DNA of 64,000 nt, taken from IMG/VR virus record IMGVR_UViG_3300012988_000001, positions 302,161 through 366,160 of that record; one strand, written 5' to 3'. Positions 554-62,143 of the stretch are shown here, in pieces; the stretch's first letter is position 1; each line of letters starts with the position of its first letter. The position numbers and the translations under genes were made by a program. A model generated the notes under the pieces. It was not told the DNA's origin. It saw only the letters and a list, made by a program, of their open reading frames with translations, and did no database searches.

Positions 554-946
554 ATGCTTCATGACTTAATAGAGTTGTATTATTATATTAAGAATCTCGA
601 TAAGATTGATAACGCAATATATAGTTGGCGTTTTGAAACATGTGGCATATTACATTATCTGGATTTGAAACAGGTAATGAATCCTCACACTGGTGAGATA
701 TATCTTGCCATCAAATTATATGTAACATCACAGGATTCAAATTTTAAGAGTTCTAGTATTCGAGTTGATCCTAATCGAGTTGTATATAGAGATTCATATG
801 CTCAATTATACACTACCAACCACGAAGGTGCTTTGACTGATGAGAATGCAGATTATCTGTTAACTTGTCTCAGTACTGAAGAGGTTAACGCTATTGGTTG
901 CATCTATGATGAAATCAATGCTTTATATAAACGGAGTCGTGTATGA
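554..946 (+). CDS. hypothetical protein, paralogue of 943..1341
   Basis: AAGGAG SD; shared DLI(E/D)xYYYIK N-terminus and LxxE(N)xxD..L...ST.E...I C-terminus. Confidence 0.8.
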   Translation: MLHDLIELYYYIKNLDKIDNAIYSWRFETCGILHYLDLKQVMNPHTGEIYLAIKLYVTSQDSNFKSSSIRVDPNRVVYRDSYAQLYTTNHEGALTDENADYLLTCLSTEEVNAIGCIYDEINALYKRSRV

Positions 947-1341
947 TCCAAGACTTAATTGATGTTTATTATTACATTAAAAGCGTTGATGACCTTCAAG
1001 ACCTTGAGGGTTGGGCATTTACTGCCGCCACGTCATCCCATGCGATAACAATTGTCCCAACGTGGAATGCAACGTATACTGATCGTAAATGGGAAATTAA
1101 AATAACCACTGGTAACATAAATGATTATCGGTGGATTTTTTTGACCAAAAATCAGGTAGAAGTATTCCATTACTGGAAATATCGTTACGCAATATCAATT
1201 CCCGGATTAATCACCGAGAATGAATCTGATATGTTGATGAAATTCATCAGTACTAATGAGATTTCTATTATAAATCAGATCTTACTTGAAATGCGTAAAT
1301 TAGAGAACAGGAGCGTTCCTTATGAACGAACTAAATCGTAA
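943..1341 (+). CDS. hypothetical protein, paralogue of 554..946
   Basis: overlapping ATGA coupling; sequence similarity to upstream ORF. Confidence 0.8.
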   Translation: MIQDLIDVYYYIKSVDDLQDLEGWAFTAATSSHAITIVPTWNATYTDRKWEIKITTGNINDYRWIFLTKNQVEVFHYWKYRYAISIPGLITENESDMLMKFISTNEISIINQILLEMRKLENRSVPYERTKS

Positions 1342-1837
1342 TAGAGATTACTTCAAACTATTGGCTGAAGAGTTTAGCCATGATATGATTGATGTTCTTT
1401 CTGATGAACCGTGTTTTACTGTTGACTTTTGGAATGGGGAAGAGTATGATTTTAACATCATAGACAACCAAAGTTATCTCCGTGACTATTGTCCGAATTT
1501 CACAGGTGACGTTCATCTCTTTACAAACAAGATCCATGTATGTTATACTCCTGATAACGGCGACATTGAATTGCGTGAGATGTTCCACTTCAATACGTCC
1601 GAGTACGGTGTACCGTCCGAGTACTGCAAAGATGAGATTCATGATAGTGATGCAAATATTATCATTATCAAGAAAGATACTTTCTGGTACAATGACGAAG
1701 AGTACAGAATGGGAAGTACAGAAGAAGAACGTTTCCAACTTTCCTGTACTGATTTGGGGTACTTCATTGAAGTACTAAATGAAGTGAAACGTTTTATCCT
1801 AGAGGATATTGAAGATCATGGAAAACCAGAAGTATAA
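1322..1837 (+). CDS. acidic hypothetical protein, EExFQ-motif family
   Basis: GGAG SD; STEEERFQLS near C-terminus. Confidence 0.8.
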   Translation: MNELNRNRDYFKLLAEEFSHDMIDVLSDEPCFTVDFWNGEEYDFNIIDNQSYLRDYCPNFTGDVHLFTNKIHVCYTPDNGDIELREMFHFNTSEYGVPSEYCKDEIHDSDANIIIIKKDTFWYNDEEYRMGSTEEERFQLSCTDLGYFIEVLNEVKRFILEDIEDHGKPEV

Positions 1838-3009: not shown

Positions 3010-3097
3010 GGGAGAGTGATGGAAAGGCATACATAGGCATCTCCAGTGTCTTAGTCTTGATGACAATGCAAGGTTCGAGTCCTTGTCTCTCCCACCA
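3010..3097 (+). tRNA. atypical class II tRNA (Leu-like body, ambiguous anticodon TCC or CCA)
   Basis: GGGAGAG/CTCTCCC acceptor, A73+CCA, T-loop TTCGAGT, variable arm GTC/GAC; anticodon stem AGGCA/TGTCT with loop TCTCCAG; one extra pair between T and acceptor stems. Confidence 0.65.
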
Positions 3098-3245
3098 AAC
3101 AATAATACCTATCATCTAATATCAGTACTGGTGGCGTGTCGTCGAGGACGATGGACAGTACTGACAGGATACCTCGTTCGCCAGCAGTGGGTTCGGGGGA
3201 TGTACGTAAAGTCGTGCTGGGTATGCCAAATTATTTAAAAAACTT

Positions 3246-3274
3246 GGGACAAAACATGAATTTTGTCCTATAAT
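3246..3274 (+). promoter_or_regulatory. class II promoter GGGACA-N12-TGTCC-TATAAT
   Basis: one of five conserved copies with 17-nt spacing. Confidence 0.75.
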
Positions 3275-3295: not shown

Positions 3296-3511
3296 ATGAA
3301 AGCTAAAAACCTGCTGGCGATGTTACAAAACAACCCAGAAGCTGAAATTATTATGCGTGAGCAAGGCTACGAAGTTGATGCGTTCAACGAAGTGTCCACC
3401 GCTCATTTGTACCGCCAAGGTGATGTTGTTTTTGAACGTGGTGAAAACTTCACTGATTTCATCGATGATGAAACCGCAGAGGCTTTAGTCGATATCATCG
3501 TCCTATCATAA
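3296..3511 (+). CDS. hypothetical protein
   Basis: GAGG SD, directly after class II promoter. Confidence 0.8.
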   Translation: MKAKNLLAMLQNNPEAEIIMREQGYEVDAFNEVSTAHLYRQGDVVFERGENFTDFIDDETAEALVDIIVLS

Positions 3512-3545
3512 ATTGTAAATTTGCTAATTGGAGAATCCAAAGAAT

Positions 3546-4127
3546 ATGAAATTAACCCTACGTAAAGCTCATCGTTTAGTTAAAGACCTACAGAACAAGT
3601 TAGGTGTTCGTAATGTTTCCAAGAACATTCACCACAGTGCTGACCTTGCTGAAGTAACAGCAACCATTGCACTTGTCGAAGGTCTAAACCGTGCTAGTGT
3701 TGAACAAACCCTAGACGTAGCAACAGCGATTAGTGAAATCCGTGCAGCAGTACAAGTACTAAACGCTCGTGACGTAGATGGTGATACCATCGATTCTCTA
3801 CTAAACGCTAAGGTTCTAGTAGAAACCAAGATGAAAGTACTTTCATCATTCGCGTATCCTACACAGCAGGATCAAGAAGGCCGTGAACTAGCGATTCGTC
3901 GCCAAGTTTCTGACGTTGCGAAACACGCTGGCTCAGGCATGTACCACAACGAAGTAACTGTTAGTGGTCACAGTGTTGATTCACATACCCTATTCAATGA
4001 ACAGTACGTTGCATTGAAACAGGAACAAGAACGCATTAGCGATAAGCTAGCGTACATCAATAACGCTCTACACGTAGAGATTGATGACAAGTATCTTGAA
4101 CTATTCAAGACACTACAAGTTTTATAA
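3546..4127 (+). CDS. coiled-coil protein (MKLTLRKA...) followed by structured non-coding RNA
   Basis: helical heptad pattern; biased codon usage suggesting high expression. Confidence 0.8.
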   Translation: MKLTLRKAHRLVKDLQNKLGVRNVSKNIHHSADLAEVTATIALVEGLNRASVEQTLDVATAISEIRAAVQVLNARDVDGDTIDSLLNAKVLVETKMKVLSSFAYPTQQDQEGRELAIRRQVSDVAKHAGSGMYHNEVTVSGHSVDSHTLFNEQYVALKQEQERISDKLAYINNALHVEIDDKYLELFKTLQVL

Positions 4128-4400
4128 GGTAGCTTAACCGCTGACCTCCCTTTACCGAAAGGGCATATAGATGTTAAATCTATACTTTACATGGTATGAA
4201 AGATTGTCTGAGGACACTTTTTCGAATAAAGAGTTTGCTGCCATCTACACTATTTTACAGATTATTTCTTGCTTGTTTGTGAAATGGCTTAACTCGATTG
4301 TCCGGTTGCTATGTTGCATGTTTGCATTGTTGCTTCGCTCTTTCGGTAACGTATCTTGGTCCCGTTCTGATGTAAATAGAATGGGACACCCTATTAATTT
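4128..4400 (+). ncRNA. putative structured RNA
   Basis: 13-bp long-range helix TTACCGAAAGGGC (4152-4164)/GCTCTTTCGGTAA (4337-4349), hairpins TATAGAT/ATCTATA and GTCCCGTTCT/AGAATGGGAC. Confidence 0.55.
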
Positions 4401-8535: not shown

Positions 8536-9018
8536 ATGTTTGTCGAAGCAGCCTTTATGGAGCAACTTGATATGCTCCCAATTCCCACGGACAAGGCACA
8601 GGTACGCTTTGATCCACCGGACAGCACTCACTACCGTGACGGTCCCGGACACCCTAGCATGTATATCCTGAATGCACCACTGAAGACGTACTTCTATAGT
8701 ACTGAAACGATGTGCTTCCTATCTCTAGATCTCAATGAAGAAATATCTTATAACTTCACTTGGTGGTTTGCGGATAATAAATTTGCAGCGAGCCTTGTTG
8801 ATCTAAATGAATTGTACTGTGAGGACACCGTACCAATTCGCGATACTATCAAGTTTGGTATATTCCACGATACCGAGGAAGAACATTTCCAAAAGGATTG
8901 CCATAAAGGTACTCCACTATCCTGGGATGCTGAACAGTTAGTACAGAAGAAGTTAACGGCACTAGCTGATTTCTATCTTAACCAGTACTATAACAATTTC
9001 CTAGTAAGGAGTGAATGA
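8536..9018 (+). CDS. EExFQ-motif family protein
   Basis: DTEEEHFQ; GGAGG SD. Confidence 0.8.
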   Translation: MFVEAAFMEQLDMLPIPTDKAQVRFDPPDSTHYRDGPGHPSMYILNAPLKTYFYSTETMCFLSLDLNEEISYNFTWWFADNKFAASLVDLNELYCEDTVPIRDTIKFGIFHDTEEEHFQKDCHKGTPLSWDAEQLVQKKLTALADFYLNQYYNNFLVRSE

Positions 9019-9440
9019 TGTTTGATTTGCTATCACCTAAAGTACTTGAGATTACACGCCAGCGTTTATTAGGTCTTTCAAAAACTGAGATCTTTGCAGC
9101 ACAACCAGAGCTACGTGAAGAACGCAATGAGTTCTTAATGAACTACGGCGATCAAGGCCGTGCTTATTACTTTGACTTCAACATTGATCTCGAAGATGGT
9201 TCGCGTGGTATTGAAGGATGTATCTCTGAAGATACTTTCAAGTTCACAGAGTACACCAGTAAAGATGAAAAGATCTTCAAGTTGGATATTCGTAAGCTAC
9301 CATCTAAGATGGGTGAAGATGAATTCTTCCAGTACTCTCTAGTTACAGACATTGGGGATTTGACAGTAGAGCAGCTTCATGCTATTCTTGTAATCCGTGA
9401 TATCATCCGTGAAGAAAAAATTGATTGGGGTGTAAAATGA
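9015..9440 (+). CDS. EExFQ-motif family protein
   Basis: GEDEFFQYSLV. Confidence 0.8.
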   Translation: MMFDLLSPKVLEITRQRLLGLSKTEIFAAQPELREERNEFLMNYGDQGRAYYFDFNIDLEDGSRGIEGCISEDTFKFTEYTSKDEKIFKLDIRKLPSKMGEDEFFQYSLVTDIGDLTVEQLHAILVIRDIIREEKIDWGVK

Positions 9441-9583
9441 AAGATAAACTAGAGAGCTATTTGTTTGTACTCGTGTTCATTTGGATGTGTCTGAAAGAAA
9501 CAGTACTTAATACTCCTTGGATGCTTTTTGTACTGGGTATCATCGTAGCAACCGGTTTCGCATATTTTGTCGGAATTATTTAA
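9437..9583 (+). CDS. small membrane protein (48 aa, not in ORF track)
   Basis: ATGA overlap; hydrophobic. Confidence 0.55.
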   Translation: MKDKLESYLFVLVFIWMCLKETVLNTPWMLFVLGIIVATGFAYFVGII

Positions 9584-9590
9584 AAAACTT

Positions 9591-9619
9591 GGGACAAAAT
9601 GAACTTTTTGTCCTATAAT
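9591..9619 (+). promoter_or_regulatory. class II promoter
   Basis: GGGACA-N12-TGTCC-TATAAT. Confidence 0.75.
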
Positions 9620-16195: not shown

Positions 16196-16496
16196 TTATG
16201 TTGCTGGCCTTACCTCGTTTAAACAAGGTAAGGGTTATATGATTGGCGATATTACATACAGTGTGAATTTCGATCCATCATCATATAATGAAGTACTATT
16301 ATTCTGGACAGAAGAAGAAGGACAGAAGTCAATTCAATTTGCTTGTACTGACTTTGGCATCTATATTCGTGAAGAAGGTGTAGAACAACCAACGCAATAT
16401 TTTTATCACACACTTATGTACACAATGGATTTTGGATTCAATCTAAAAGACCTTGCAAATGTGCATTACATTTTCAAAGAAATGAAAAATTCCTGA
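16170..16496 (+). CDS. hypothetical protein
   Basis: AAGG SD. Confidence 0.7.
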   Translation: MTISQTVNSYVAGLTSFKQGKGYMIGDITYSVNFDPSSYNEVLLFWTEEEGQKSIQFACTDFGIYIREEGVEQPTQYFYHTLMYTMDFGFNLKDLANVHYIFKEMKNS

Positions 16497-16523
16497 GACA
16501 AAACGTGACTCGTGTCCTATAAT
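16495..16523 (+). promoter_or_regulatory. class II promoter
   Basis: GAGACA-N12-TGTCC-TATAAT. Confidence 0.7.
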
Positions 16524-30038: not shown

Positions 30039-30254
30039 ATGACACTGGAAATGATTTCGTATCAGAATGGTGAAGCAGTATTAGTTTTCAAATACATCCG
30101 TGAACATGGTTTGGAGATTGATAGTGTACGCTTGATCGAAAGCGATACCAGTACTAATATCATGTTACTATACGTTTGGTGCAATGAGGAACAAAAGGAA
30201 GAACTTATCAGGCTCAAAAAGATTGATGAGAATTCTGGGACAAAAGTCGAATAA
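30039..30254 (+). CDS. hypothetical protein
   Basis: GGAG SD. Confidence 0.7.
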   Translation: MTLEMISYQNGEAVLVFKYIREHGLEIDSVRLIESDTSTNIMLLYVWCNEEQKEELIRLKKIDENSGTKVE

Positions 30255-30265
30255 TGTCCTATAAT
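30237..30265 (+). promoter_or_regulatory. class II promoter driving the large ncRNA
   Basis: GGGACA-N12-TGTCC-TATAAT. Confidence 0.75.
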
Positions 30266-30269
30266 ATGA

Positions 30270-30700
30270 TATAAACCGATTACAGGGAGCTTCGTGCTCC
30301 CTGCTGTTATTTCCTGATCCGTTGAAAACGTAAACGGCAGATGAGTAGAGAATCGCTACGCAGTGCAGATGAAACCCGCTAGGCGGCAATGTGGCACTCT
30401 AAACGAACACGAAAAGCACGTTAGTTCGCTCGATAGAACATATGAGAAACCCCTCACCAGATTGCTAAGGGAGTTTATTAAAGGATGAGTCACGCCTGTA
30501 ATAAACGCATTGCACAGTGGACTGTATCGCTGTACAATGTAGTGTAGTAAGACTACGACCGTTGCATAGAACAGAGATAGGAAGAAACAGGGCAACCCGC
30601 TTCCGTGTCGAAAGATAATTCTCTATACAGTAAGCCGATGCCACCAGCGTCAAACTTTCCTCCCTTCCCAGTGGGGGGATGAAATTGCCTCCACAAACCT
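30270..30700 (+). ncRNA. large (~430 nt) multi-helix RNA of unknown class
   Basis: own promoter, no credible ORF, at least 10 helices visible by eye incl. CAGGGAGC/GCTCCCTG, GTTTATTA/TAATAAAC, long-range GTGGCA/TGCCAC, GNRA loop. Confidence 0.7.
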
Positions 30701-30805
30701 CGTCAATATAAAAGGTTGACAGTACAGAAGAATTGAATTACAATGAACGTAGTGAAGTGTAATTCCGTTGCTATCGAAGATAGAAACGCTCATTAGGAGA
30801 ATGAA

Positions 30806-31669
30806 ATGATTAACCTTACAGTCCCATTAGATATCCCAATCAATCTATTAAGTGAAATATATCTTCCCTATGTGGATTGGACTAACGTTCCTGATCCAGA
30901 TATTCAATCCCTACCTACATCTTCATTGAAGTATGTCAGTACTAGGAAGTTACTCTCCACCTATCTCAATAACAAAAATGCTGGTATAAGTGATGAGGAT
31001 TTAATGTCAATCATTGTTCGGGACATGAAGATCCTCAACAATCAGTACGACTACACTAAAGACGCACGACTTGAAGAATTTTTGCATACATTTTGTACTG
31101 AAGAGTTCTTATCTAAGTATAACAAACAAATTTACGCTTTGTGTAAACTAAACAATACTTCCAAACGTTCGATTTCACTATTACTAACCTATGGTCTTCA
31201 ACCACTCCACAAATTAGTGGATTTTGGATTGTATGAAATACGTTGGAATGTACTTAATCGCCGTGAAGTACCTATGCAGCACCGCTACGAAATACTACGT
31301 AGTGGTTCATACATGGGATATATGATTGTGTATGATAAAGAGTTTGTTGAAATGGCTCCAGTACTGTATAGTGGTCAACTGGAATCGATGCCCTTCATGA
31401 TTCATGTACCATACAATTTCGATGATTATGCGATTTCACATATATTTCAAGGTAACACGGTAATGTTTCCTGGGATTGCTGATCGCCAAGATATCACATG
31501 GGATGAGCTAATAGATTTGTATCTTGCTGAAAAGATTCATTACAGTCAAATCGAAGCAGCGTGGGAGTACTTCTTACGTAATGGTGACTTTGATATTGAA
31601 GCATATGAAAACCGCATAAGTAGTATGATGCCTAACAATACAGTCTTTAAGAAGGAGGACTTCTTATGA
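30806..31669 (+). CDS. hypothetical protein
   Basis: AGGAG SD after TTGACA..TACAAT promoter. Confidence 0.8.
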   Translation: MINLTVPLDIPINLLSEIYLPYVDWTNVPDPDIQSLPTSSLKYVSTRKLLSTYLNNKNAGISDEDLMSIIVRDMKILNNQYDYTKDARLEEFLHTFCTEEFLSKYNKQIYALCKLNNTSKRSISLLLTYGLQPLHKLVDFGLYEIRWNVLNRREVPMQHRYEILRSGSYMGYMIVYDKEFVEMAPVLYSGQLESMPFMIHVPYNFDDYAISHIFQGNTVMFPGIADRQDITWDELIDLYLAEKIHYSQIEAAWEYFLRNGDFDIEAYENRISSMMPNNTVFKKEDFL

Positions 31670-50669: not shown

Positions 50670-51014
50670 ATGTGGGGATTTGTTAGTGAAATCATTTTCT
50701 TTGTTCTGGCAACATTGGGTTCAATAATTGCACTCGATTATATGTTCGGAACGGATAAGCTAAAAAATATACGCGAAGCTCTCTGCACCGACCGCCACGC
50801 TATTATTCTAATAGCAGGTGCAGTAATCCTAATTGCTGGTGTCCTGCATTTATGGGCTATTATGTTGGACAGTACAACATTTAAAGACCTAACAACTTTC
50901 TACATGTCATTGGCATGGACTATTACATGGGCGTATTATACAGTACTCAATGTAAAAGAAGGTATAATTACCTTACGTAATAATAGTATCCTTAAACGTC
51001 AAAAGCCCCAGTAA
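50670..51014 (+). CDS. membrane protein
   Basis: 3 TM. Confidence 0.75.
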   Translation: MWGFVSEIIFFVLATLGSIIALDYMFGTDKLKNIREALCTDRHAIILIAGAVILIAGVLHLWAIMLDSTTFKDLTTFYMSLAWTITWAYYTVLNVKEGIITLRNNSILKRQKPQ

Positions 51015-51028
51015 GGGGCTTTTCTTTT
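51001..51028. terminator. bidirectional terminator
   Basis: AAAAGCCCC-agta-AGGGGCTTTT between convergent units. Confidence 0.8.
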
Positions 51029-52193
51029 ATGGAATATAGTACGGAACTGTAGTATCAATTGAATAAATTGGATGTGATGGCGTAAACACTGATCCAGTAC
51101 CATACAATTTACCATTGTATACAAACACTGTACCTGATAACATTTTACCCGGAAATAAAAACTCATTATAATCGGTGGGTGTTGGTGTACCTGAACTTAA
51201 TACATATGAAGAAAGTACTGCTGTACTCCCATTACCATTACCGTATTGGTTACCATTACCGACAGAATATATACCAGTAGTTGCAATAACACTTACTGTA
51301 TTACTACTCTGTTGTGAAGGCATTAACTTGACTGGTGTTGCAGCAGTACCACCAGTACCGAATTGTGTGGAAAGAGCAAACGTCAATTGGTTTCCAGTAG
51401 TTGCACCATTACCACCAAACGCCGCATTTCCAGCAAAAAGAACAACTTTCTTGGTCGAACTATTAGTCTGTGCGATAAGTTGGACAAAATCAGAACCTGC
51501 AACAACATCAGTGATTAGTGGATATGTAGTAACGACTGTTGAACTAGTACTTTGTGTCCATGTATTAACTTGTGTAGTATTGTTATTACCAAATTGTCCA
51601 TTGGCGTTATATCCAGCGAACCATACTTTATTTGAGGTATCAATATGAGCAGCACTTCGATTATGTATTGAGATTTTTAATACACCACTTTTGATCAAGA
51701 ATGGCGTTCCATATCTTGTCCCAACTGCCCCAGAACCTAATGCACCTTCTAAGTTATAACCCATACCATACATATTACCCGCATTATCAAGTATTAGTGT
51801 ACTGTACTGTCCAAACTTCATATCTACAATTGTATTAAGCGGAATCACAGGACTGATTGTTGTTATTTGGGTCCACACTTGAGTACTACTACTTCCGGTG
51901 GCTAACATCGTATACTGTAATCCACACCAGTAAGTAGTATCATCGTTTTTAATAATAAACGTGGTATAGTTCGATGAATAAAAATCACGAACATTTGTAT
52001 TTGTTAATGTCCACGTTGTTCTAGGGCTGTTGTCACCTAAACCAAAGTTACCAAATCCTTGACCTCCTAGGCAATACAACTCACCGTTATCATATAGGAT
52101 AAAGATACCACCAGTACTGGTACTAACTTTCTTTATTTTTGGTGCTTCTGGTAATATATTACCATATTTTACTATTCTTGCGAATGGAATCAT
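51027..52193 (-). CDS. MIPFARI-family protein, RCC1-like beta-propeller
   Basis: MIPFARIVKYGN; G.N..G.LG repeats. Confidence 0.85.
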   Translation of the reverse strand: MIPFARIVKYGNILPEAPKIKKVSTSTGGIFILYDNGELYCLGGQGFGNFGLGDNSPRTTWTLTNTNVRDFYSSNYTTFIIKNDDTTYWCGLQYTMLATGSSSTQVWTQITTISPVIPLNTIVDMKFGQYSTLILDNAGNMYGMGYNLEGALGSGAVGTRYGTPFLIKSGVLKISIHNRSAAHIDTSNKVWFAGYNANGQFGNNNTTQVNTWTQSTSSTVVTTYPLITDVVAGSDFVQLIAQTNSSTKKVVLFAGNAAFGGNGATTGNQLTFALSTQFGTGGTAATPVKLMPSQQSSNTVSVIATTGIYSVGNGNQYGNGNGSTAVLSSYVLSSGTPTPTDYNEFLFPGKMLSGTVFVYNGKLYGTGSVFTPSHPIYSIDTTVPYYIP

Positions 52194-52203
52194 TATTTTT
52201 CTC

Positions 52204-53295
52204 CTACGGTAATTGTATTTCAGTAAATGAAGTGGAATTTATATTAAAAACAGAAAGTGCACTGCTACCAGTACCAGTAGCATATAACTTACTATCAACA
52301 ACAACAAATACGCAGTTGTTTGAAGAACTGGACACCCATTCAACATTCGTCAATGGTAACCCAGATGAATACCTACCAAACTGTGAATGTGTTACCAAAT
52401 CACCAGTACCCAATGTATTGTTATCATTGCGACCTGCACTATATAATCCACTTTGTGGATTAGCACTGGCAAAGATGTTATCACCACACGCACCAGACTG
52501 CACCAAATCGCCTGTAGCGTTACCAATGCCTGTCCATTGACCCGAACTACCATTGGTGTTCAAAAACGTGCTACCACACGCATAGGCGACATTTGAATAG
52601 TTCACAGCATAAGTCGCTGCTCCGTTTGTAACCACATCACGGATGTTTGTCATTGTGGATGCTCCCAACGGACCTGAACTAGATGCCCCAGTACTACGCC
52701 CCAATTGACCACCACCGTTATATCCACCACAGTATAATGAACCGTCTTTCAGTACAACACATGTAACATTACTACATGAGAATATCTTAGCTCCATCTGC
52801 ATATACATATTGCGGCGTAGATGTAGTACTGTATATTTCCCCATATGTATTATAACCACGTGTGTATACTTTGCCATCAGTTAATAAGTAAACCATACCA
52901 GTACTTGTTAATGTAATATCGGCAATCGTATCTAGTGTAAAATGTGTAAAGTTTGGAGTAACATCAGTCCAGACCGTATTTTGAGTACCAGAACTTGAAG
53001 CAGTATACAATGACTGTCTTCCGATATGCCACCATGTACCATCTTCGGTGATGGCTAATGCACATTTATCACCATAACCACAATATAAACGTTGTACATT
53101 ACTTCTTATTAATTTAAATGCACCGGGACTAGAAACTCCATCGGGATATACGGAAGCATCACTTCCTCTAGCATACAAATCACCATTTTGATATAATATA
53201 AACAATGTATTATTGTTCATTATTGCCATTTTTTTAATATTCTTTAAGTCCGGGGCAATATTACCGTACTTACTTATTCTTGCAAATGGTATCAT
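52204..53295 (-). CDS. MIPFARI-family protein, RCC1-like beta-propeller
   Basis: MIPFARISKYGN; GYNGGGQLG, GRNDNNTLGTG. Confidence 0.85.
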   Translation of the reverse strand: MIPFARISKYGNIAPDLKNIKKMAIMNNNTLFILYQNGDLYARGSDASVYPDGVSSPGAFKLIRSNVQRLYCGYGDKCALAITEDGTWWHIGRQSLYTASSSGTQNTVWTDVTPNFTHFTLDTIADITLTSTGMVYLLTDGKVYTRGYNTYGEIYSTTSTPQYVYADGAKIFSCSNVTCVVLKDGSLYCGGYNGGGQLGRSTGASSSGPLGASTMTNIRDVVTNGAATYAVNYSNVAYACGSTFLNTNGSSGQWTGIGNATGDLVQSGACGDNIFASANPQSGLYSAGRNDNNTLGTGDLVTHSQFGRYSSGLPLTNVEWVSSSSNNCVFVVVDSKLYATGTGSSALSVFNINSTSFTEIQLP

Positions 53296-53344
53296 ATTGT
53301 TATCCTTTATTTTATCTCTTTTTATATTTAAGTACTCAAATTAC

Positions 53345-54076
53345 TTAAGGATATAAGTTAGTTAAACTGAAATTGGCATTAACCACTAAATCCTTACGAA
53401 CCCTGTATCTATCTACGTATGTATGGTTTGAACCATTGTTATTTACATGTCCACCTATTCCAAATCTAGTTGCACCAGTTGGTGTTGGAAATGTAAATGT
53501 AAAAGTATCTACTTGAACCCCGTTGATAAAGAAATAACTATTCTTTGTAACAGAATCATATGAATACAAAATATGTTTCCATACATTAGTACTTAATCCT
53601 GCATATAAAGTTCCTGAACGAGAAGTACTTGTCCCGGCATATTGATAGTATACATTGGGATTAAAAGGAAACCATGCCATTAGTTTAGGGTTATTATTGG
53701 AAGCCGTTATATAATGTCCAAATGGTATAGTTTCTAATGAACCATTGGAGATTTGTCTTTGCCAAAAATCTACAGTAAATGACTGACTACTCCCAAGCTG
53801 CACGGAAAGAACAGTACTGTCTAAACTACTAACTAATCCCGCAGCCAAGTTTATTATATTTGTACCGTATGGCCCTGTACTGTCAATCATTAAATTGGGA
53901 CGTAAGTATCCAGCATTCTGCATTTCCAAGGTCATAGTATTACCTACATAATCAGTAAATCCATTACTGGAAAAATTATTACCATCCCACGCCATTACTA
54001 CATTACTATCAGTATACCAAGGTGGACTAATTGGTAATGTATTACCATATTTTGATATTCTTGCAAATGGTATCAT
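53345..54076 (-). CDS. MIPFARI-family protein, LamG/ConA-like domain
   Basis: FTVDFW...WKHI...FINGVQ...GIGG...DRYRV. Confidence 0.85.
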   Translation of the reverse strand: MIPFARISKYGNTLPISPPWYTDSNVVMAWDGNNFSSNGFTDYVGNTMTLEMQNAGYLRPNLMIDSTGPYGTNIINLAAGLVSSLDSTVLSVQLGSSQSFTVDFWQRQISNGSLETIPFGHYITASNNNPKLMAWFPFNPNVYYQYAGTSTSRSGTLYAGLSTNVWKHILYSYDSVTKNSYFFINGVQVDTFTFTFPTPTGATRFGIGGHVNNNGSNHTYVDRYRVRKDLVVNANFSLTNLYP

Positions 54077-54087
54077 ATTTTGTCCTA

Positions 54088-54759
54088 TTATTTTATCTCT
54101 TTTATATTTAAGTATTTTATATATCCAGTAAAGGCAGAACTCAATCCCTTAAAGTATCCCCCAATACCAAATGTAGTGCTAGCACCAAATGGTTGGTTTG
54201 TGCCAGTAACTGTACCCTGTTGTACTCCGTTCATATCGTATATGGTTGCCGTTGTTGTCAATCCAATGCGTGTAATGACAACACGCCTCCATGCATTATC
54301 AACTGCACCAGTTACGTAGTTACGCCAATAATCACTTATTGTGTTACCAGTAGTGAATATCTGTGCTTGTCCTGAAGTTTGGTGTATTTGATAGCATATC
54401 CCTGTACTCCAGTTTGCGGCATCAGGATAATAACCAGTTCCCCATACCAATGCGGTTGATCCCGCTGAACTTAAATATTCAAATTCCATGACCCAGTTTT
54501 TAGTACTCAAATCTAACGCTGAATTTGATGTTATAGGAGAACCAAATATAGCTCCGGTGAAATACATCACATTACCAGCACTTGTATTATCGTAAACAAC
54601 CGATGCCGCACCGGAATTTAATTTTGTAAAAACATTTGCATGTGAACTATTATCAACAATATTAGTATCTCCTACAGTACTTTTTCTAAAATCAACGTCC
54701 AATAACGTTAAATCTGTAACAGTATTACCATATTTGCTTATTCGTGCAAAAGGTATCAT
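54088..54759 (-). CDS. MIPFARI-family protein, LamG/ConA-like domain
   Basis: WRRVVITR...FGIGG...FTGYI. Confidence 0.85.
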   Translation of the reverse strand: MIPFARISKYGNTVTDLTLLDVDFRKSTVGDTNIVDNSSHANVFTKLNSGAASVVYDNTSAGNVMYFTGAIFGSPITSNSALDLSTKNWVMEFEYLSSAGSTALVWGTGYYPDAANWSTGICYQIHQTSGQAQIFTTGNTISDYWRNYVTGAVDNAWRRVVITRIGLTTTATIYDMNGVQQGTVTGTNQPFGASTTFGIGGYFKGLSSAFTGYIKYLNIKEIK

Positions 54760-54770
54760 ATTTTCTCTCC

Positions 54771-55478
54771 TTAATAATGTATTCCCGCTCTCATTCTATA
54801 CCTATCAATCGCCGCAGTAAAATTAGCATTGTCTACGGTCCTGATGCTAGCTGTTGTTGTTGCACCCGGTGATGCTAATGTTCTAGTAACTGAACCCTGA
54901 TATACTTCATTAATATAAAATTTCAACAGTCCCGAAGACTTCTCATATGTAATAGCATGATGCTGCCATACTCCTTGACCATAATATGCAGTAGTAGGCC
55001 AAGAACTATAAGAAACTGGTGCACCACTGTTATTCCATAAGTGCACATATCCCGGCTGATTACCACCACTATATGCTATTAATATTCTTGATGTAGAAGC
55101 AATAGCAGAAAACGGAGTGTTAATCGCTAATGGATATAAATGCACTACCGCAGGATATACATACGCATCAAGTTGTTTAGTGTGATAATCTATAGTCCAA
55201 TCATTATCTATATAATTTCCAATAGGAAAACTACTAGCTCCTATGTTCCAATATATACCACCACTTTTAATCATCAAACCAGTACCAAACGGTGAATCTG
55301 GATAACTCTCTATAGTACTAGTTGCCGCACCACCATTACCCTTTAACAATGGTACACCATTATAATCAGTCCATCCACTTGTACCAACAATTCTAGTACT
55401 GTCAAATGCAATTAATGTATCTTTATACCACGGATCTGGTCTATTTCCGTAAGTACTTATTCTTGGAAAAGGTATCAT
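54771..55478 (-). CDS. MIPFPRI-family protein, LamG/ConA-like domain
   Basis: WTIDY...WQHHAITY...FYIN...IDRYRMRAG. Confidence 0.85.
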   Translation of the reverse strand: MIPFPRISTYGNRPDPWYKDTLIAFDSTRIVGTSGWTDYNGVPLLKGNGGAATSTIESYPDSPFGTGLMIKSGGIYWNIGASSFPIGNYIDNDWTIDYHTKQLDAYVYPAVVHLYPLAINTPFSAIASTSRILIAYSGGNQPGYVHLWNNSGAPVSYSSWPTTAYYGQGVWQHHAITYEKSSGLLKFYINEVYQGSVTRTLASPGATTTASIRTVDNANFTAAIDRYRMRAGIHY

Positions 55479-55479
55479 A

Positions 55480-56613
55480 TTAACTCACTCCCACTAATGT
55501 AGATTTAACTAGATTTATATTACCAGTATTAACACCCAATTGATATGCTAAACTATTACCACCCATAACAACACCAGTTTTCTGTAATGATATATACTGA
55601 ATAGAGGTAGCACTTTCAGTACTTGGAGTATAAATTTTAGTAATAACTTCATCAACATTTTTATTAGCACGACCAACATATGACCCAACTGAATCAAATG
55701 ACGAAGTTCTATTCACATTTCTACCACCAGCATTCAGTACTGTAGGAGTAGCAGTAAGTACATAATACGAACTCTCATAGTTCAAACCAAATAACTTAAC
55801 TCCACTAGCCATTAAAGTATTATTAAATGTTGGCCTGTTTAGATTTCCGTCCAACTCACCATTTAAATTACCATCACCATATAGTGTCCCAGTATCATCT
55901 AAGTACATAATACTCGCCCCACTTCCACATGCAATCTGAACTATATTACTAGCTGCTGTTCTCTGTATCCATGCTGTAGTACTAATATATGTTCCAAATC
56001 CAAATCCAGTACCAACCGCACGAACTGAACCAGCACCCCATACTGTACCATCATTAAGCAACAATGTACTATATGCACTACTACCTTCACTTGTAACAAA
56101 TGTATGAAACATATCTTTAATGTTATTCTTACTGCTCAAAGTCCATGTACTAATCAATCCAGTACTTGCATTTCCAAATCTACCGTTAGTTCCCGCTCCA
56201 CGGAAGTATAATGTACCATCATTTAATAGTATCATAGCACTCGCATTAGTACTGCATTGTATTTTCTTAATATTAATCGCACTAAACGGTAAAGTCATCA
56301 CTGTTGGAACAGAAACCACACCTCCACTATCAAAAGATACGGCTACGCCTATACGGTATAGCGTAGTGTTTTTAACATACATCGTGAATTGATATCCACA
56401 AAACATAGCTGATACTCCAGTATCAACCAATACAAAGGTAGAAGTCGTAGTTATTAAACTATTGTTTAGAATGTTGTTAGTATTTGTTCCTCGTCCCCAC
56501 AAGTTACCATCACTGTCTAAAACCAATGCATGTGACCTAGATACCTGTATATCAACTATATTTTTAATCTTAACTGAATTACCATATTTGGATATTCTAG
56601 CAAACGGTATCAT
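55480..56613 (-). CDS. MIPFARI-family protein, RCC1-like beta-propeller
   Basis: HALVLDSDGNLWGRGTN, GTNGRFG. Confidence 0.85.
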   Translation of the reverse strand: MIPFARISKYGNSVKIKNIVDIQVSRSHALVLDSDGNLWGRGTNTNNILNNSLITTTSTFVLVDTGVSAMFCGYQFTMYVKNTTLYRIGVAVSFDSGGVVSVPTVMTLPFSAINIKKIQCSTNASAMILLNDGTLYFRGAGTNGRFGNASTGLISTWTLSSKNNIKDMFHTFVTSEGSSAYSTLLLNDGTVWGAGSVRAVGTGFGFGTYISTTAWIQRTAASNIVQIACGSGASIMYLDDTGTLYGDGNLNGELDGNLNRPTFNNTLMASGVKLFGLNYESSYYVLTATPTVLNAGGRNVNRTSSFDSVGSYVGRANKNVDEVITKIYTPSTESATSIQYISLQKTGVVMGGNSLAYQLGVNTGNINLVKSTLVGVS

Positions 56614-56716
56614 ATTTTTTTACCCTCCCTTAAGGTAATCTCATCAATTATCTCTAAAGATACTTATTATGTATTTAACCAAAAAAAGGCCAGTACAGTC
56701 AATGTACTGACCCATC

Positions 56717-57364
56717 TTATACACTCATTGTCATCCTGTAATTATCTATTATCCCTATTAATGGTATAGCATTATCAGTACTATTACCAATCCTCAATGT
56801 ATTCGAAGATGAACTAAAACCTAAACTCATCACCTGTGATGTACCAATCTGTACATCATTAAGCCAAAAAGATAAGTTCGTACCAACTCTCTGTAACTTA
56901 ATCTTGAACCAAGTATTAATCGGTAACTTAGTAGAACCAACACCGAATCGGAATCTCTGTACCGATCCTGTAGTACTGTAACCATCTAACGATATCTGAC
57001 TAGCTGCACCAAACACGTTGTTTAATGTAACCCAATAAGATCCAGTACCTAAGTTATTATTTAAATTACCAACTAATATCTGCGTAGCAGTAGAAGTCAA
57101 ATACACATTACTCTCAATAACAAAATTAGTACTGTTACCTATACTAAACACCGATGGAACTCCACCAGAACCTATCTGCAAATATCCAGATGCTGGAAAT
57201 TGTATAGCATTATTCTGCGAAGTCACAAAATTAGTCGGTGTAACATTTATGTTTGAACTCTTTACCACAAAATCATGCATCTGATTCTGTAGTACTGAGA
57301 TTATTTTATTTGGATTGTCATACGAAGTATTCCCGTATTTCACTATCCTTGCAAAAGGTATCAT
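56717..57364 (-). CDS. MIPFARI-family protein, LamG/ConA-like domain
   Basis: NTWFKIKLQRVG...LRIG...GIIDNYRMT. Confidence 0.85.
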   Translation of the reverse strand: MIPFARIVKYGNTSYDNPNKIISVLQNQMHDFVVKSSNINVTPTNFVTSQNNAIQFPASGYLQIGSGGVPSVFSIGNSTNFVIESNVYLTSTATQILVGNLNNNLGTGSYWVTLNNVFGAASQISLDGYSTTGSVQRFRFGVGSTKLPINTWFKIKLQRVGTNLSFWLNDVQIGTSQVMSLGFSSSSNTLRIGNSTDNAIPLIGIIDNYRMTMSV

Positions 57365-58518
57365 TCTAAACCTCCCGGTAAATCCAATTTAACAAATGGT
57401 GCATTAACAATCGAACCCTGTCCAACACAGTAACCAACGCAGTATAGAGTACTTTTACCATCTACATCTTGATATAACACGTACATGTTTTTGTTACCAG
57501 ATGAAGTCCCACCGTTACCGCATATGAACTTAATATCACTGGAATTAAAACCACTAGGCATTGCTCTTATATTCACAACACTTCCACTGTTACTGTTAGA
57601 CGAACTAGCAATCGGCAACTGATTTGATGAATACGCACCAAGCATTAGCGTTGTTATTCCTATTCCACATCCAGCAAACGCAGCAACTCGTCTTGGTGCA
57701 TTAGATGCAGCAGTTAAGGTATTATTAAAACTAGCGACACCAGTTAATGAACCACAATGTACCGCCCTACCATCACTCAATATACCAGTACTGAATGTTC
57801 CACCATTCGCCATCTGATAATCTGTATAAGCTAATGTTCCCAATTTAGTGAACGAAAAAAACGTACTAGTTGCAGCAGAACTAATTAATCTGTTACTATT
57901 CGAACCTATACCATATAAGAACCCATCAGTACCCTGAATGATAAAAACAAACCCACTTGCAGTTTGCTCGAATGATATCATTTTTTCAACTGTTACTACA
58001 CTCGATGTGTTTAATCTCCATGTGCGATCTATAACAGTACTGCCATCTGCTAATGTCAACGCTACACTATATAATGTATTATCATATGTTAATATAGCAA
58101 CATAATTTGTATGATTATATATCTGCTTAATACCCTTTGCCAAAATTTCCGCAGGGATATGATCAGTAACATCCAACCATGATAAATTAGATGTTGGTAA
58201 GTTTGGAGTACTAAACTTCGCCGCTAATATTGAACCACATACATATACTTTATCATCATTTGTAACTGCTATTGTACTAGCCAGTCTATTTGAACTAAAT
58301 GATTTAACATTTGAGATATTACTTTTGTACCAACCCTGATTTGCAGTTGAAACAGTTGTCCCAATTCCCATAGACCCACTCGAAGTATATCCAAATGCCC
58401 ACATTTCACCATCAGCCGTTAATAACATCAAATGTGTATCGTTTGCTTGTAAATCTTTAATCTTTTGTAACCCCGCTACGGTATTACCATATTTGCTTAT
58501 TCTAGCAAAAGGTATCAT
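57361..58518 (-). CDS. MIPFARI-family protein, RCC1-like beta-propeller
   Basis: HLMLLTADGEMWAFG..SGSMGIG. Confidence 0.85.
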   Translation of the reverse strand: MIPFARISKYGNTVAGLQKIKDLQANDTHLMLLTADGEMWAFGYTSSGSMGIGTTVSTANQGWYKSNISNVKSFSSNRLASTIAVTNDDKVYVCGSILAAKFSTPNLPTSNLSWLDVTDHIPAEILAKGIKQIYNHTNYVAILTYDNTLYSVALTLADGSTVIDRTWRLNTSSVVTVEKMISFEQTASGFVFIIQGTDGFLYGIGSNSNRLISSAATSTFFSFTKLGTLAYTDYQMANGGTFSTGILSDGRAVHCGSLTGVASFNNTLTAASNAPRRVAAFAGCGIGITTLMLGAYSSNQLPIASSSNSNSGSVVNIRAMPSGFNSSDIKFICGNGGTSSGNKNMYVLYQDVDGKSTLYCVGYCVGQGSIVNAPFVKLDLPGGLE

Positions 58519-58528
58519 GTCTCTCTCC

Positions 58529-59446
58529 TTATGTTAACTTAAATGCTTGTGTTGTCGTTGCACCAGAATTATTCTTTCCACCCATAGTGAGTATAAAATT
58601 ATTCGCACTATTCGCGAATATATTACAGTTCACCAAATAACTAGGAACCGTACCCATAGACTCAATAGAAGAATTACCCGGAACATATGTGTACATATTA
58701 CCAGTACTATAACCAAACAATACAACAATGTCTTTATATGCAGCTATACGCCCTATAGCCTCTGTAGTGCTCAATATGACTCGCCACGTCCCAGACACCG
58801 TATTATACCCCATTAGGTATAACGTGCTCCCTGTGCCTCCCATAACCAATAATTCAGTACCAACCAACACCATGCTCGTTCCCAATGCCATAGGATATGG
58901 GGAAGTGGCTAATGTCGTCCACGTTGAAGTACTGATATCAAATACTGACGCTGTGTTAGCCGCCGCTAATGTACTATAAGAACCAAACAACCACAACTTA
59001 TTATCATAACATACCATAGAAGCATGTAATCTGGCTGCTGGTTTCGTCCCTAAAGTATTAACTAAACTCCACGCATTAGTACTGACATTATATACATATA
59101 AATCGTTCTGCATACTTCCACCCGCTGGTAATGATGTACTACCACCAAATGAATATACTCTGTTATTAACATCATCAAATGCCATTGCTGGTGCACTTCG
59201 GTTTGAACCAAATTGTGCTAGCTGTGTCCAGTTATTAGTACTAGGATTATATCTCCAAAAGTCTCGGTAATATGTATTGGTCAGTACTCCACCCATAGCA
59301 TATATCTCTCCTGTACTCGCCGCACAAAAACCCATCTCCGCTCTTGTACTCATTGCACTGTAAGTCTGTGCTTCGTAATTTCCTAAGAATGAATTTTGTG
59401 GTATAATCACATTCCCGTACTTTACTATCCTCGCAAAAGGTATCAT
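58529..59446 (-). CDS. MIPFARI-family protein, Kelch-repeat beta-propeller
   Basis: IYAMGG..WRYNP..NNW, VYSFGG..YNV..NAW, LLVMGG. Confidence 0.85.
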   Translation of the reverse strand: MIPFARIVKYGNVIIPQNSFLGNYEAQTYSAMSTRAEMGFCAASTGEIYAMGGVLTNTYYRDFWRYNPSTNNWTQLAQFGSNRSAPAMAFDDVNNRVYSFGGSTSLPAGGSMQNDLYVYNVSTNAWSLVNTLGTKPAARLHASMVCYDNKLWLFGSYSTLAAANTASVFDISTSTWTTLATSPYPMALGTSMVLVGTELLVMGGTGSTLYLMGYNTVSGTWRVILSTTEAIGRIAAYKDIVVLFGYSTGNMYTYVPGNSSIESMGTVPSYLVNCNIFANSANNFILTMGGKNNSGATTTQAFKLT

Positions 59447-60156
59447 GAATAAATCTCCTGTACTGTGAATCCGGTAACCGGATACTTCATACCAGCCCGC
59501 ATCCGGTATCTCTCAACTATAGCACTATTTGTAGGAGTACTGTTATATACATCACCACATAAAGTGAAAGCAGCCAACGATCCACCAGTACTTAATACAT
59601 CGTACTGTGCAGTAGGTACACCATCTATATACAAATAATGTCGGTTTATTGACGAATCATACATAAAACAATAATGATGCCACACTGGAGTATTCCATGG
59701 AATTGCAGTGTAATTGTAATATTGAACGTTATTACCTAATTTAAATGTCGCAGAACTACCACTATAATCATTTAATAATTGATATTTGGGAGTACTAGCC
59801 CACGGACCGCTAAATGTATTTAAACAATTAATTGCACCAAAAAATGTATATCCTGATATCAATGTCCGGTGCCAAAAATCTAAAGTATATGATGATGTAA
59901 CCCATTGAACCGGAAAACCATTTTTACCTATAATACTCTTCTTTACTTGTACCCCTGAACCATATGGCATATCAGTTCCAATACTGATAGTAGCTGAACC
60001 AGCAGCACCATTTATATCCTGTACAGTTATCGTATTACCTACATAATCAGTAAACTCTGTACTAGAAAATATAGTACTATCCCATGCCAATAATGATCCA
60101 CTGTACCATGGCAACACAGTGTTCCCGTACTTACTTATTCTCGCAAATGGTATCAT
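59443..60156 (-). CDS. MIPFARI-family protein, LamG/ConA-like domain
   Basis: YTLDFW...WHHYC...LYIDG...ERYRMRAG. Confidence 0.85.
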   Translation of the reverse strand: MIPFARISKYGNTVLPWYSGSLLAWDSTIFSSTEFTDYVGNTITVQDINGAAGSATISIGTDMPYGSGVQVKKSIIGKNGFPVQWVTSSYTLDFWHRTLISGYTFFGAINCLNTFSGPWASTPKYQLLNDYSGSSATFKLGNNVQYYNYTAIPWNTPVWHHYCFMYDSSINRHYLYIDGVPTAQYDVLSTGGSLAAFTLCGDVYNSTPTNSAIVERYRMRAGMKYPVTGFTVQEIYS

Positions 60157-60184
60157 TTCCCCCCTCCATAATTTTCCATTATTA

Positions 60185-60194
60185 CATATTTACC
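60185..60194 (-). promoter_or_regulatory. putative late promoter GGTAAATATG for the MIPFARI array
   Basis: same 10-mer and spacing as at 18675. Confidence 0.55.
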
Positions 60195-60215
60195 CAAATT
60201 CCCCAAAAGATTCTT

Positions 60216-60244
60216 GGGACAAACACCACAAAATGTCCTATAAT
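60216..60244 (+). promoter_or_regulatory. class II promoter
   Basis: GGGACA-N12-TGTCC-TATAAT. Confidence 0.75.
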
Positions 60245-60274
60245 ATCTGTATATAAATCCCGCAAGGAGCAATC

Positions 60275-61288: not shown

Positions 61289-61495
61289 GTATACGCCAGA
61301 ACGCATAGGAAGCCCGTAGGCAAGACTTCTCTTACACCCTGTACAGGTGTCGCTCCTGTAGATTGCGTCCAGTAGACGCTTATCGAAAGGATTCAACACC
61401 TGTAAAAATACCCAACTGTTGTGTTGTACAGTACTTTTCTTTTTATAATTATACAGGGAATCGTTTCATATGCAACTATTCTCCTGTACTCATGT

Positions 61496-61531
61496 GAGCT
61501 ACGGTAAGCTACGGTAAGCTACGGTAAGCTA
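61496..61531 (+). repeat. 10-bp tandem repeat (AGCTACGGTA) x ~3.5
   Basis: GAGCTACGGTAAGCTACGGTAAGCTACGGTAAGCTAC. Confidence 0.9.
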
Positions 61532-62143
61532 CTGTGAAGTACTCCTTCTGTACTTTACCCCCTTCCGCTATATCTTCTCTTAAAGAGAAGTATAAAGTAC
61601 TGAAAAGTACTTGTACCTTGTTTTGTAAAAGCCCTTTCACCTTTCAGGGAAAGTACCATCGACCCTTGAGCTAAAATCTGGAAAGTACTCCATCCTAAAT
61701 CTCGATCCTAGAAATTTTGGAGTACCTTCCAACCTTCAGCCCAATGTTGGAGTACTGACCAAATCATTAACCGATGCACCAAAAGTACTTGACACGTTTG
61801 TTAGACTATGGTAACATGCCATTAGTGGGAATCCACCCTGCGTGTACGTGTATGTATATAATACCAGTACTGGATAAATTAACAGTAAATTTAATGAAAA
61901 TAATGATTGACATGCTGGTGGGTTTTAGGCATAATAGTTGCCATAGAGTCATGGTTTTCCTTCCATAACTTTTCGTTGAATATAAACAGTACGGCTTACC
62001 CTGCAAGTATTCAGTACTGATATTAAGCTAAGAGGAAGTTCACCACCTATCACCTACCAGACTTCCAATCTGGGAAATGATAAAAAATGTAAGAATAATA
62101 AGAAGGGAGAATCCCCACTGAGAAATACAGTCTATTGAGATTA

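Follow-up and report, generated by a model that had tools for sequence, protein, structure and literature searches.

We analyzed an intergenic region of a 64,000-nucleotide stretch of viral DNA, hereafter the window, to test the proposal that it encodes a large structured non-coding RNA. Between two + strand ORFs lies a gene-free gap of 551 nt (30255-30805), in which no ORF exceeds 79 aa in any frame. The gap lies behind a recurrent phage promoter, which is followed by an 8-bp hairpin. A motif search for TGRRAYN-N15-18-TATAAT found five occurrences on the + strand of the window (3245, 9590, 16494, 30236 and 60215), against 0.66 expected on both strands by shuffling. The motif precedes every member of the family described below, and matches the 'divergent RpoD-like' promoter with a TGAAACG -35 element described for phage CBB (PMC5259590), where this promoter class mostly precedes DNA-synthesis genes. 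In most copies it is also a good extended -10 sigma-70-type site, and its phage specificity, as proposed in the earlier note, is therefore not shown. Folding of the single sequence gave an energy only modestly better than shuffled sequences on either strand (z -2.3 on + and -3.3 on -), which alone proves little, and the case for a structured RNA thus rests on comparison with homologues.

To find relatives of the element, we searched GenBank phages by blastn and obtained matches in 62-71 records, all of them roughly 350-kb jumbo phages of the Rak2/121Q/GAP32/CBB/BF group, infecting Escherichia, Salmonella, Klebsiella, Erwinia, Yersinia, Serratia, Cronobacter, Pectobacterium and Xanthomonas. Each record has 2-5 places, and 4-5 when a central family member is used as query. 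The matches lie in unannotated gaps of 575-840 nt or under short 'hypothetical protein' calls that are not conserved. Two motif scans of IMG/VR followed by nhmmer gave 31 distinct copies. The window is part of a 366,160-bp metagenome contig that carries at least four of them, namely the copy in the window (locus L019), a copy between endonuclease VII and baseplate genes (L021), and copies at loci L017 and L033/L066/L104. No paralogue was found inside the window itself by blastn or nhmmer, the other copies of this genome lying outside the 64 kb. The copies fall into six paralogue groups (a to f, the window copy belonging to group a) that are syntenic across genera, so the duplications are old. 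In seven genomes all four mapped copies point the same way, even where the neighboring genes are on the other strand.

The family is not confined to jumbo phages. A scan of one genome per bacterial species, confirmed by nhmmer, found a full-length copy in a Citrobacter amalonaticus chromosome, in a prophage, directly after a large serine integrase that abuts host pilus genes and near a CI-type repressor, and a full-length copy in a Buttiauxella MAG contig, beside a related repressor gene that is convergent with it. Two of 5,426 complete E. coli genomes (LR-29-1 and EEC_W5) carry one copy; in strain LR-29-1 it is full-length and lies in an unannotated 1.4-kb gap of a roughly 10-kb island beside ffs, with a disrupted integrase. 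No plasmid in PLSDB has a member. In a tree these chromosomal copies nest inside the jumbo-phage paralogue groups; since the tree is unsupported by formal tests, the direction of transfer is only suggested. Metagenome contigs hold a more distant clade in which only the 3' domain aligns. No partner protein shared by the E. coli island, the Citrobacter prophage and the jumbo-phage loci examined was found, as only island-prophage and prophage-prophage matches turned up.

To assess whether the homologues support a common fold, we examined compensatory base changes. On 20 copies, RNAalifold predicted 75 pairs, 42 of them with compensatory double changes. On 40 non-redundant members (51-96% identity), 71 of 106 proposed pairs show double changes. 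A blind test that assumes no base-pairing rules (G-test with APC correction over all 126,253 column pairs) placed proposed pairs in ranks 1-16, in 18 of the top 20 and in 27 of the top 40. Frequent G.U pairs would be A.C on the other strand, which fixes the + strand. A helix scan further revealed three long-range pairings, PK1, PK2 and PK3. In PK1 at least five different complementary sequence pairs occur, in PK2 four compensated variants besides that of the window, and in PK3 two of the three positions covary. Of the four readable contigs of the distant metagenome clade, three keep PK1 with other sequences and all keep the PK2 strands. Between the helices, many unpaired stretches are invariant across all paralogues. 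The features are collected in the table.

Table. Features of the locus in window coordinates, with base-pair counts, scan ranks and other support for each.
Feature	Coordinates	Strand	Description and support
Upstream ORF	30039-30254	+	71 aa
Promoter	30236-30265	+	TGGGACA, 17-nt spacer, TATAAT; inferred (not measured) transcription start about 30272-30274
RNA core	30273-30706	+	About 430 nt; helices P1-P17, three long-range pairings and conserved 3' tail ending CCUCGUCAA; nhmmer 357-426 bits to the family profiles
P1	30283-90/30296-303	+	5' hairpin, 8 bp; also scores as terminator-like for the upstream gene; hairpin of unrelated sequence at this place in most copies
P2	30319-23/30333-37 plus 30315-16/30338-39	+	Hairpin; CG 28/UA 11 and UA 33/AU 6; rank 13 of 126,253
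GAUGAG strand	30340-45	+	Between P2 and P3
P3	30345-48/30356-59	+	Hairpin; UA 17/AU 14/CG 9; rank 1 of 126,253
P4	30362-66/30394-98	+	Encloses P5; AU 25/UA 13 and UA 29/AU 11
P5	30376-79/30383-86	+	UA 32/CG 3/UG 3; most paralogues carry an extra hairpin inside it
PK3	30389-91/30439-41	+	3-bp contact: A30389-U30441 (AU 40), U30390-A30440 (UA 37/CG 3), G30391-C30439 (GC 28/AU 12); rank 17 in the blind scan
P6	30404-08/30424-28	+	Hairpin, followed by conserved single strand CUCGAUAGACAUAU; all 5 pairs in the top 0.1% of background
P7	30443-46/30453-56	+	Hairpin; AU 27/GC 12
P9	30473-80/30499-506	+	Hairpin; UA 28/AU 8/CG 4 and UA 19/CG 14; loop replaced in most paralogues by a module UAUAGAUCCGUCYAAAAUUU
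P10	30508-20/30527-39	+	13-bp hairpin; 8 of 13 pairs in the top 0.1%; highest helix covariation in the helix scan
PK1, 5' strand	30521-30527	+	ACUGUA(U) in the P10 loop
PK1, 3' strand	30625-30631	+	AUACAGU, after P13; variants UUCGAAU/AUUCGAA, GUCGAAU/AUUCGAC, UCAUAU/AUAUGA, UUCAUGU/ACAUGAA, UUCGCAU/AUGCGAA
P11	30543-48/30552-57	+	Hairpin, followed by the invariant CGACC
PK2, 5' strand	30561-65	+	GUUGC
PK2, 3' strand	30592-96	+	GCAAC in the P14 loop; variants GUUAC/GUAAC, GUUGU/AUAAC, GUUGU/ACAAC, GUUGA/UCAAC
P13	30573-77/30620-24	+	Three-way junction with P14 and P15 (30573-30624); CG 14/UA 13/AU 9 and UA 19/AU 10/CG 10
P14	30580-84/30600-04	+	Three-way junction
P15	30606-09/30614-17	+	Three-way junction
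P16	30637-41/30647-51	+	Hairpin; GAUGC/GCGUC alternates with GACGA/UCGUC, two compensated positions
P17 and tail	30658-64/30673-79; to 30706	+	GC hairpin with an invariant G-run and conserved tail AUGAAAUUGCCUCCACAAACCUCGUCAA; near-invariant in all copies
3' module	30707-30790	+	Hairpins P18 and P19; present after nearly all copies, including those with no gene downstream
P18	30735-42/30758-65	+	Hairpin, loop with AACGUAGUGAAG
P19	30766-30788	+	Hairpin; compensatory stem changes CAUUC/GAAUG, CAUAC/GUAUG, CAAUC/GAUUG, CUAUC/GAUAG, CUUGC/GCAAG, CUAAC/GUUAG
Sigma-70-like promoter	30716-30744	+	TTGACA-17-TACAAT, 11 of 12 matches; consensus match only; kept only in the window/Munch subgroup; could serve the downstream gene
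Downstream ORF	30806-31669	+	287 aa, no family match; starts 100 nt after the RNA tail

These results confirm the observation made in the earlier note from the sequence alone, that an ORF-free structured element of about 430 nt lies behind a promoter at 30270-30700. Ten of the eleven helices listed there are conserved. Eight of them show compensatory changes: CCGTT/AACGG, GTAG/CTAC, CCGC/GCGG, CGAAC/GTTCG, GTTTATTA/TAATAAAC, CATTG..ACAG/CTGT..CAATG, GTAGT/ACTAC and the AGAGA-GGAAG/CTTCC-TGTC/GATA-TCTCT junction. CAGGGAGC/GCTCCCTG is a hairpin of different sequence in most copies, and the terminal GC hairpin is conserved with one-sided changes only. The proposed long-range GTGGCA/TGCCAC helix is not conserved, its two halves belonging to P4 and P16, and the conserved unit runs further 3' than 30700, to about 30790. 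Other candidate pairings were rejected as well. The closing helix GAUGAG/CUCGUC predicted by RNAalifold is invariant, shows no compensatory change and is broken in 4-7 of 38 sequences at three of its five pairs, and is not supported; GGCAAU/AUUGCC and U-tract/CAAUAAA pairings, read against the alignment, are inconsistent across copies.

The 3' part differs between paralogue groups. In groups b, c, d and f a short hairpin with a perfect U6-7 tract is inserted directly after P16, whereas it is absent in groups a and e. It is followed by the strictly conserved P17, a tail ending CUCGUCAR, and the 3' module. In 16 copies from four to five of the six groups, a ribosome-binding site and start codon follow 83-147 nt after the tail, but the genes are unrelated between groups, and those that follow other paralogues are unrelated to the downstream gene of the window. 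The group b copy lies between minus-strand genes and is bounded by the promoter and by a bidirectional terminator just after the 3' module, with no same-strand gene after it, and yet keeps the whole structure in every genus examined. Two positions near P16 and two in the tail, within repeats (..CGUCAR) that flank the P17 segment, covary with the same letter (U,U/C,C in 38 of 38; G,G/A,A in 36 of 38). Close relatives switch both positions together, and paralogues within one genome differ. The tail therefore belongs to the same functional unit. A search for a third column complementary to these two repeats found none.

We next compared the element with known RNA classes. A scan of the window against Rfam 15 (4,227 models, including GOLLD, ROOL, OLE, HEARO, raiA, RNase P, tmRNA and group I/II introns) at gathering thresholds gave only two tRNAs elsewhere, and a scan of 30100-30900 at E up to 10 gave only a CrcZ fragment on the P1 hairpin (E = 6.7). 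Eight other loci holding copies gave no consistent hit inside the element. ARAGORN found three tRNAs at 3012, 5550 and 9874, and no tRNA or tmRNA at 30.2-30.8 kb. A group I intron is not indicated, as the element is intergenic with its own promoter in all copies, has no Rfam hit and differs in the order of its pseudoknots. The resemblance to bacterial RNase P RNA is short and local (ACAG..AACCCGCUU), no RNase P model scores at E up to 10, and the AAC of that stretch pairs in this family with GUU of GUUGC (PK2), which differs from P4 of RNase P. Our literature searches found no description of the family, including in a 2026 review of jumbo phages, and no transcriptome of a Rak2-like phage; the RNA class is thus new relative to Rfam 15 and the papers searched, a comparison that does not extend to the unnamed 10,006 candidate RNAs of PMC10690425. 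The interpretation in the earlier note, a new class of large RNA without tmRNA, RNase P or group I/II signatures, is supported, with the corrections given above and the addition that the family is multi-copy; its suggestions of a catalytic, scaffold or sponge function remain hypotheses.

Among described systems, GOLLD and ROOL, shown by cryo-EM to form RNA-only multimers (10.1101/2024.12.08.627333), are likewise large (over 400 nt), multi-helix, pseudoknotted RNAs of unknown function carried by lytic phages and prophages and found by comparative analysis, with high conservation in unpaired positions. Neither model matches the present family in sequence or structure; here the hosts are Enterobacteriaceae and their jumbo phages, and there are 4-5 diverged copies per genome at fixed places, each behind a conserved promoter and followed by a conserved 3' module. 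PA5oct, a distantly related jumbo phage, has four RNA-seq-defined non-coding RNAs (ncRNA001-004; PMC7318152) of similar size (236-619 nt, ncRNA002 being 451 nt) that lie in ORF-free gaps among early genes, two of them highly expressed, with unknown function. An nhmmer comparison of ncRNA001, 002 and 004 detected no sequence similarity, and the hallmark motifs are absent from ncRNA002. The HK022 put RNA and the Bacillus EAR element are promoter-proximal structured RNAs followed by terminators and then genes, and a copy is needed at each transcription unit; they are about 65-120 nt and lack this architecture, whereas here some copies have no downstream gene and two groups lack the terminator. 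The T4 oriF/oriG transcripts and ColE1 RNA II are primer RNAs; the features in common are a transcript, here predicted from sequence, from a middle-type promoter at several dispersed places in a T4-related genome and a G-run near the 3' end, but T4 origin transcripts are not known to be conserved structured RNAs, chromosomal island copies do not fit, and no hybrid or unwinding element is evident. The P4 satellite immunity leader (CI RNA with seqA/seqC repeats) is a long untranslated leader with repeated elements and internal terminators carried by integrative elements, as the present RNA may be, but no complementary 'seqB' partner column was found here, and no sequence similarity is known.

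Taken together, the data indicate a gene for a large non-coding RNA, about 430 nt in its core and about 520 nt with its 3' module, predicted to be transcribed on the + strand from its own promoter. That this is a functional structured RNA family is nearly certain. What the comparison establishes is a fold of at least 15 conserved helices and three long-range pairings, with many unpaired nucleotides invariant among paralogues otherwise only 51-65% identical, which is the signature of a compact tertiary fold binding one common partner or forming a defined RNA assembly, and the presence of 4-5 anciently duplicated, co-oriented copies per Rak2/121Q-like genome. Expression, inferred from sequence alone, and function belong to the inferred part. 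We tentatively favor a product that works as a stable RNA in its own right, as an RNP or an RNA-only assembly in the manner of GOLLD and ROOL, whose partner would be a host or phage component common to jumbo phages and some temperate elements. In this view, the copies sit at the head of early/middle transcription units, and in most paralogues the weak built-in terminator after P16 would split output between a short RNA and read-through into the tail, the 3' module and whatever gene follows, while the copy in the window, lacking that terminator, should read through. The free-standing group b and Buttiauxella copies, the invariant core shared by all copies and the occurrence of the same RNA in different mobile elements favor this reading. 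On the other hand, no partner has been identified, the strictly conserved tail and 3' module lie downstream of the terminator-like hairpin, with a gene starting shortly after the tail in the 16 copies noted above, which fits a cis-acting leader at least as well, and diverged paralogues kept at fixed places argue for a role tied to each place rather than for mere dosage.

The main alternative, possible but somewhat less likely, is such a leader, in which the folded RNA, alone or with a factor or ligand, would act on the polymerase that made it or on the nascent transcript and decide whether transcription passes the weak terminator and later ones into the downstream genes, by processive antitermination of the put/EAR kind or as a very large attenuator or riboswitch-like sensor. 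The position of every copy directly behind a promoter, the U6-7 hairpin right after the folded core in most paralogues, the conserved tail and hairpins before start sites of unrelated genes, the retention of copies at fixed, dispersed places in the direction of early/middle transcription, the same-strand genes after the E. coli island and Citrobacter prophage copies, and the coevolution of the tail with P16 across the terminator are consistent with it. However, the group b and Buttiauxella copies keep everything without a same-strand gene downstream, the terminator hairpin is dispensable in groups a and e, the helix scan found no conserved alternative (antiterminator) pairing with its strands, and an RNA of about 430 nt with three long-range pairings is several times larger than known antiterminator RNAs.

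Other readings are unlikely. A replication-origin transcript, in which a structured RNA from a middle-type promoter would form a persistent RNA-DNA hybrid and prime leading-strand synthesis, as at T4 oriF/oriG or with ColE1 RNA II, would agree with the dispersed, co-oriented copies in a roughly 350-kb T4-related genome, with the use of this promoter class in CBB, with the invariant G-run (ColE1 RNA II uses a G-run for hybrid formation) and with one copy lying beside the recombination nuclease and endonuclease VII genes; but GC skew does not change at the element at 30 kb (although T4-like phages need not show such a change), copies in a 10-kb chromosomal island and in a prophage beside its integrase are odd places for a jumbo-phage origin, T4 origins are not known to share a structured RNA, and nothing points to a DNA unwinding element. 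A ribozyme or self-processing RNA, for example one that cleaves itself from the downstream mRNA, or a remnant of a self-splicing or mobile RNA element, is suggested by the size, the pseudoknots and the many invariant unpaired nucleotides, which resemble large ribozymes, by the multiple copies and the occurrence in unrelated mobile elements, and by the two co-varying repeats flanking P17. Against it, the group I, group II, RNase P and small-ribozyme models of Rfam gave no hit at E up to 10 in nine copies, the element does not interrupt a gene, the copies are orthologous at syntenic places and so not recently mobile, and a hammerhead-like GAUGAG...CGAAG lacks invariant core bases in several copies. 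A non-RNA reading, as a DNA-level repeat (protein-binding array or recombination site) or as short coding genes, is nearly excluded. GenBank records place 'hypothetical protein' CDSs on the element, for example ENKO_477 and four small minus-strand CDSs in Hallingskeid, and the same-letter covariation could suggest DNA sites. However, the compensatory changes with G.U pairs valid on one strand only speak against both, the annotated ORFs are not conserved between close relatives, and the longest + strand stop-free stretch has a median of 56 aa and is not conserved. Mismatches between the window and Munch by codon position are 24/18/19 (p = 0.6), with indel lengths of 2, 2, 1, 1, 2, 1, 1, 1 and 3, and the repeats differ between paralogues within one genome, which argues against one genome-wide DNA-binding protein.

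Large, intricately folded bacterial and phage RNAs are rare, and each one found so far (RNase P, group I/II introns, OLE, GOLLD, ROOL, raiA) has opened new biochemistry. The present family is well suited to experiment, as its phages infect E. coli K-12 and other laboratory enterobacteria, about 270 natural copies in GenBank genomes are available for covariation, the 4-5 paralogues per genome act as natural replicates, and chromosomal copies in E. coli can be expressed and deleted without a phage. It also corrects annotation, since dozens of GenBank jumbo-phage records either leave these gaps empty or fill them with spurious 'hypothetical proteins'. A more speculative possibility, less likely than not, is that this is a previously unknown class of large RNA machine of jumbo phages, which could be a self-assembling RNA-only structure, a ribozyme or a giant polymerase-modifying leader, and which host islands and temperate phages would have repeatedly captured, perhaps as a decoy or as an infection sensor in phage-host or phage-phage conflict. 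If host islands captured the RNA as a decoy or sensor, it would be a new kind of player in phage defence.

The promoter motif TG(G/A)GACAAA-N-TGTCCTATAAT was found at four more sites on the + strand of the window. At these sites, the -35 element and the bases just before the -10 form an inverted repeat (GGACA...TGTCC), which suggests a dimeric regulator site overlapping the promoter. One of the four sites precedes about 250 nt of non-coding sequence followed by tRNA-Leu. In addition, a near-consensus sigma-70 promoter (TTGACA-17-TACAAT) lies inside the 3' module of the RNA and overlaps the 5' strand of P18. This promoter is kept only in the window/Munch subgroup, and it may give the downstream gene its own start.

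Coordinates of features in the window and in other sequences carrying family members
Sequence	Position	Strand	Feature
Window	3245-3274	+	Promoter motif
Window	9590-9619	+	Promoter motif; precedes the non-coding stretch and tRNA-Leu (9874)
Window	16494-16523	+	Promoter motif
Window	60215-60244	+	Promoter motif
Window	3012-3097	+	tRNA-Gly(UCC) called by ARAGORN, 86 nt
Window	5550		Second tRNA-Gly(UCC)
Window	30481-30498		P9 loop of the window's copy
Window	30645/30698 and 30653/30706 (non-redundant alignment columns 660/752 and 669/760)		Same-letter covarying positions, P16 region and 3' tail
Window	30716-30744	+	Sigma-70-like promoter in the 3' module
Window	about 51000-62000		Excursion in GC skew
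L050 (Citrobacter amalonaticus P55, NZ_JBALIF010000001.1)	3499-4130		Full-length family member with its promoter
L121 (E. coli LR-29-1, NZ_AP027515.1)	9001-9583		Intact family member
L003 (GenBank record carrying a copy)	923-1210		Annotated gene ENKO_477
L005 (GenBank record carrying a copy)	1112-1723	-	Four annotated CDSs

Within the RNA itself, same-letter covariation (U,U or C,C; G,G or A,A) links the P16 region to the 3' tail; no complementary third column was found in the alignment. A distant clade of the family changes both ..CGUCAR repeats to ..ACGAAG together. This clade is represented by the OERT/OEQO metagenome contigs L080, L100, L103, L120, and L102, which have the same promoter-RNA-hairpins-RBS layout and a near-identical P13-P14 core, but a different 5' domain with a hairpin loop UGAGAG. 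The neighboring large ORFs on these contigs have no PHROG match that would indicate the type of phage. In the family alignment (A3), a conserved module UAUAGAUCCGUCYAAAAUUU is inserted in the P9 loop of most paralogues, and a second time in the P15 loop of some of them (the alignment examples include the family member L002 as well as L050 and L121). In contrast, the window's copy has a different P9 loop.

Several GenBank records, including L003, L005, PHA46, 7t3, and others, annotate short "hypothetical protein" genes across the RNA. These annotated genes are not conserved between close relatives and are probably false gene calls. Elsewhere in the window, the tRNA-Gly(UCC) called by ARAGORN does not reach the threshold of the tRNA model of Rfam at this place; it may be an unusual or degenerate tRNA, with a second tRNA-Gly(UCC) present in the window. 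The GC skew of the window turns from positive to strongly negative (-0.15 to -0.26) and back at about 62 kb, which suggests a block of minus-strand genes and is unrelated to the RNA.

In C. amalonaticus P55, the full-length family member lies directly after a large serine integrase at the edge of a prophage, next to host pilin/T2SSE genes. A CI-type S24 repressor is encoded about 900 nt further on, and a second promoter-like motif lies just upstream. In E. coli, only 2 of 5,426 complete genomes, those of strains LR-29-1 and EEC_W5, have a copy. In LR-29-1, one intact copy sits in an unannotated 1.4-kb gap of a roughly 10-kb island beside ffs. The island also holds an IS3-disrupted tyrosine integrase, hypotheticals, DUF4326, DUF488, a dual-OB protein, and a recombinase. 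This island of E. coli could be a satellite or a defense island.
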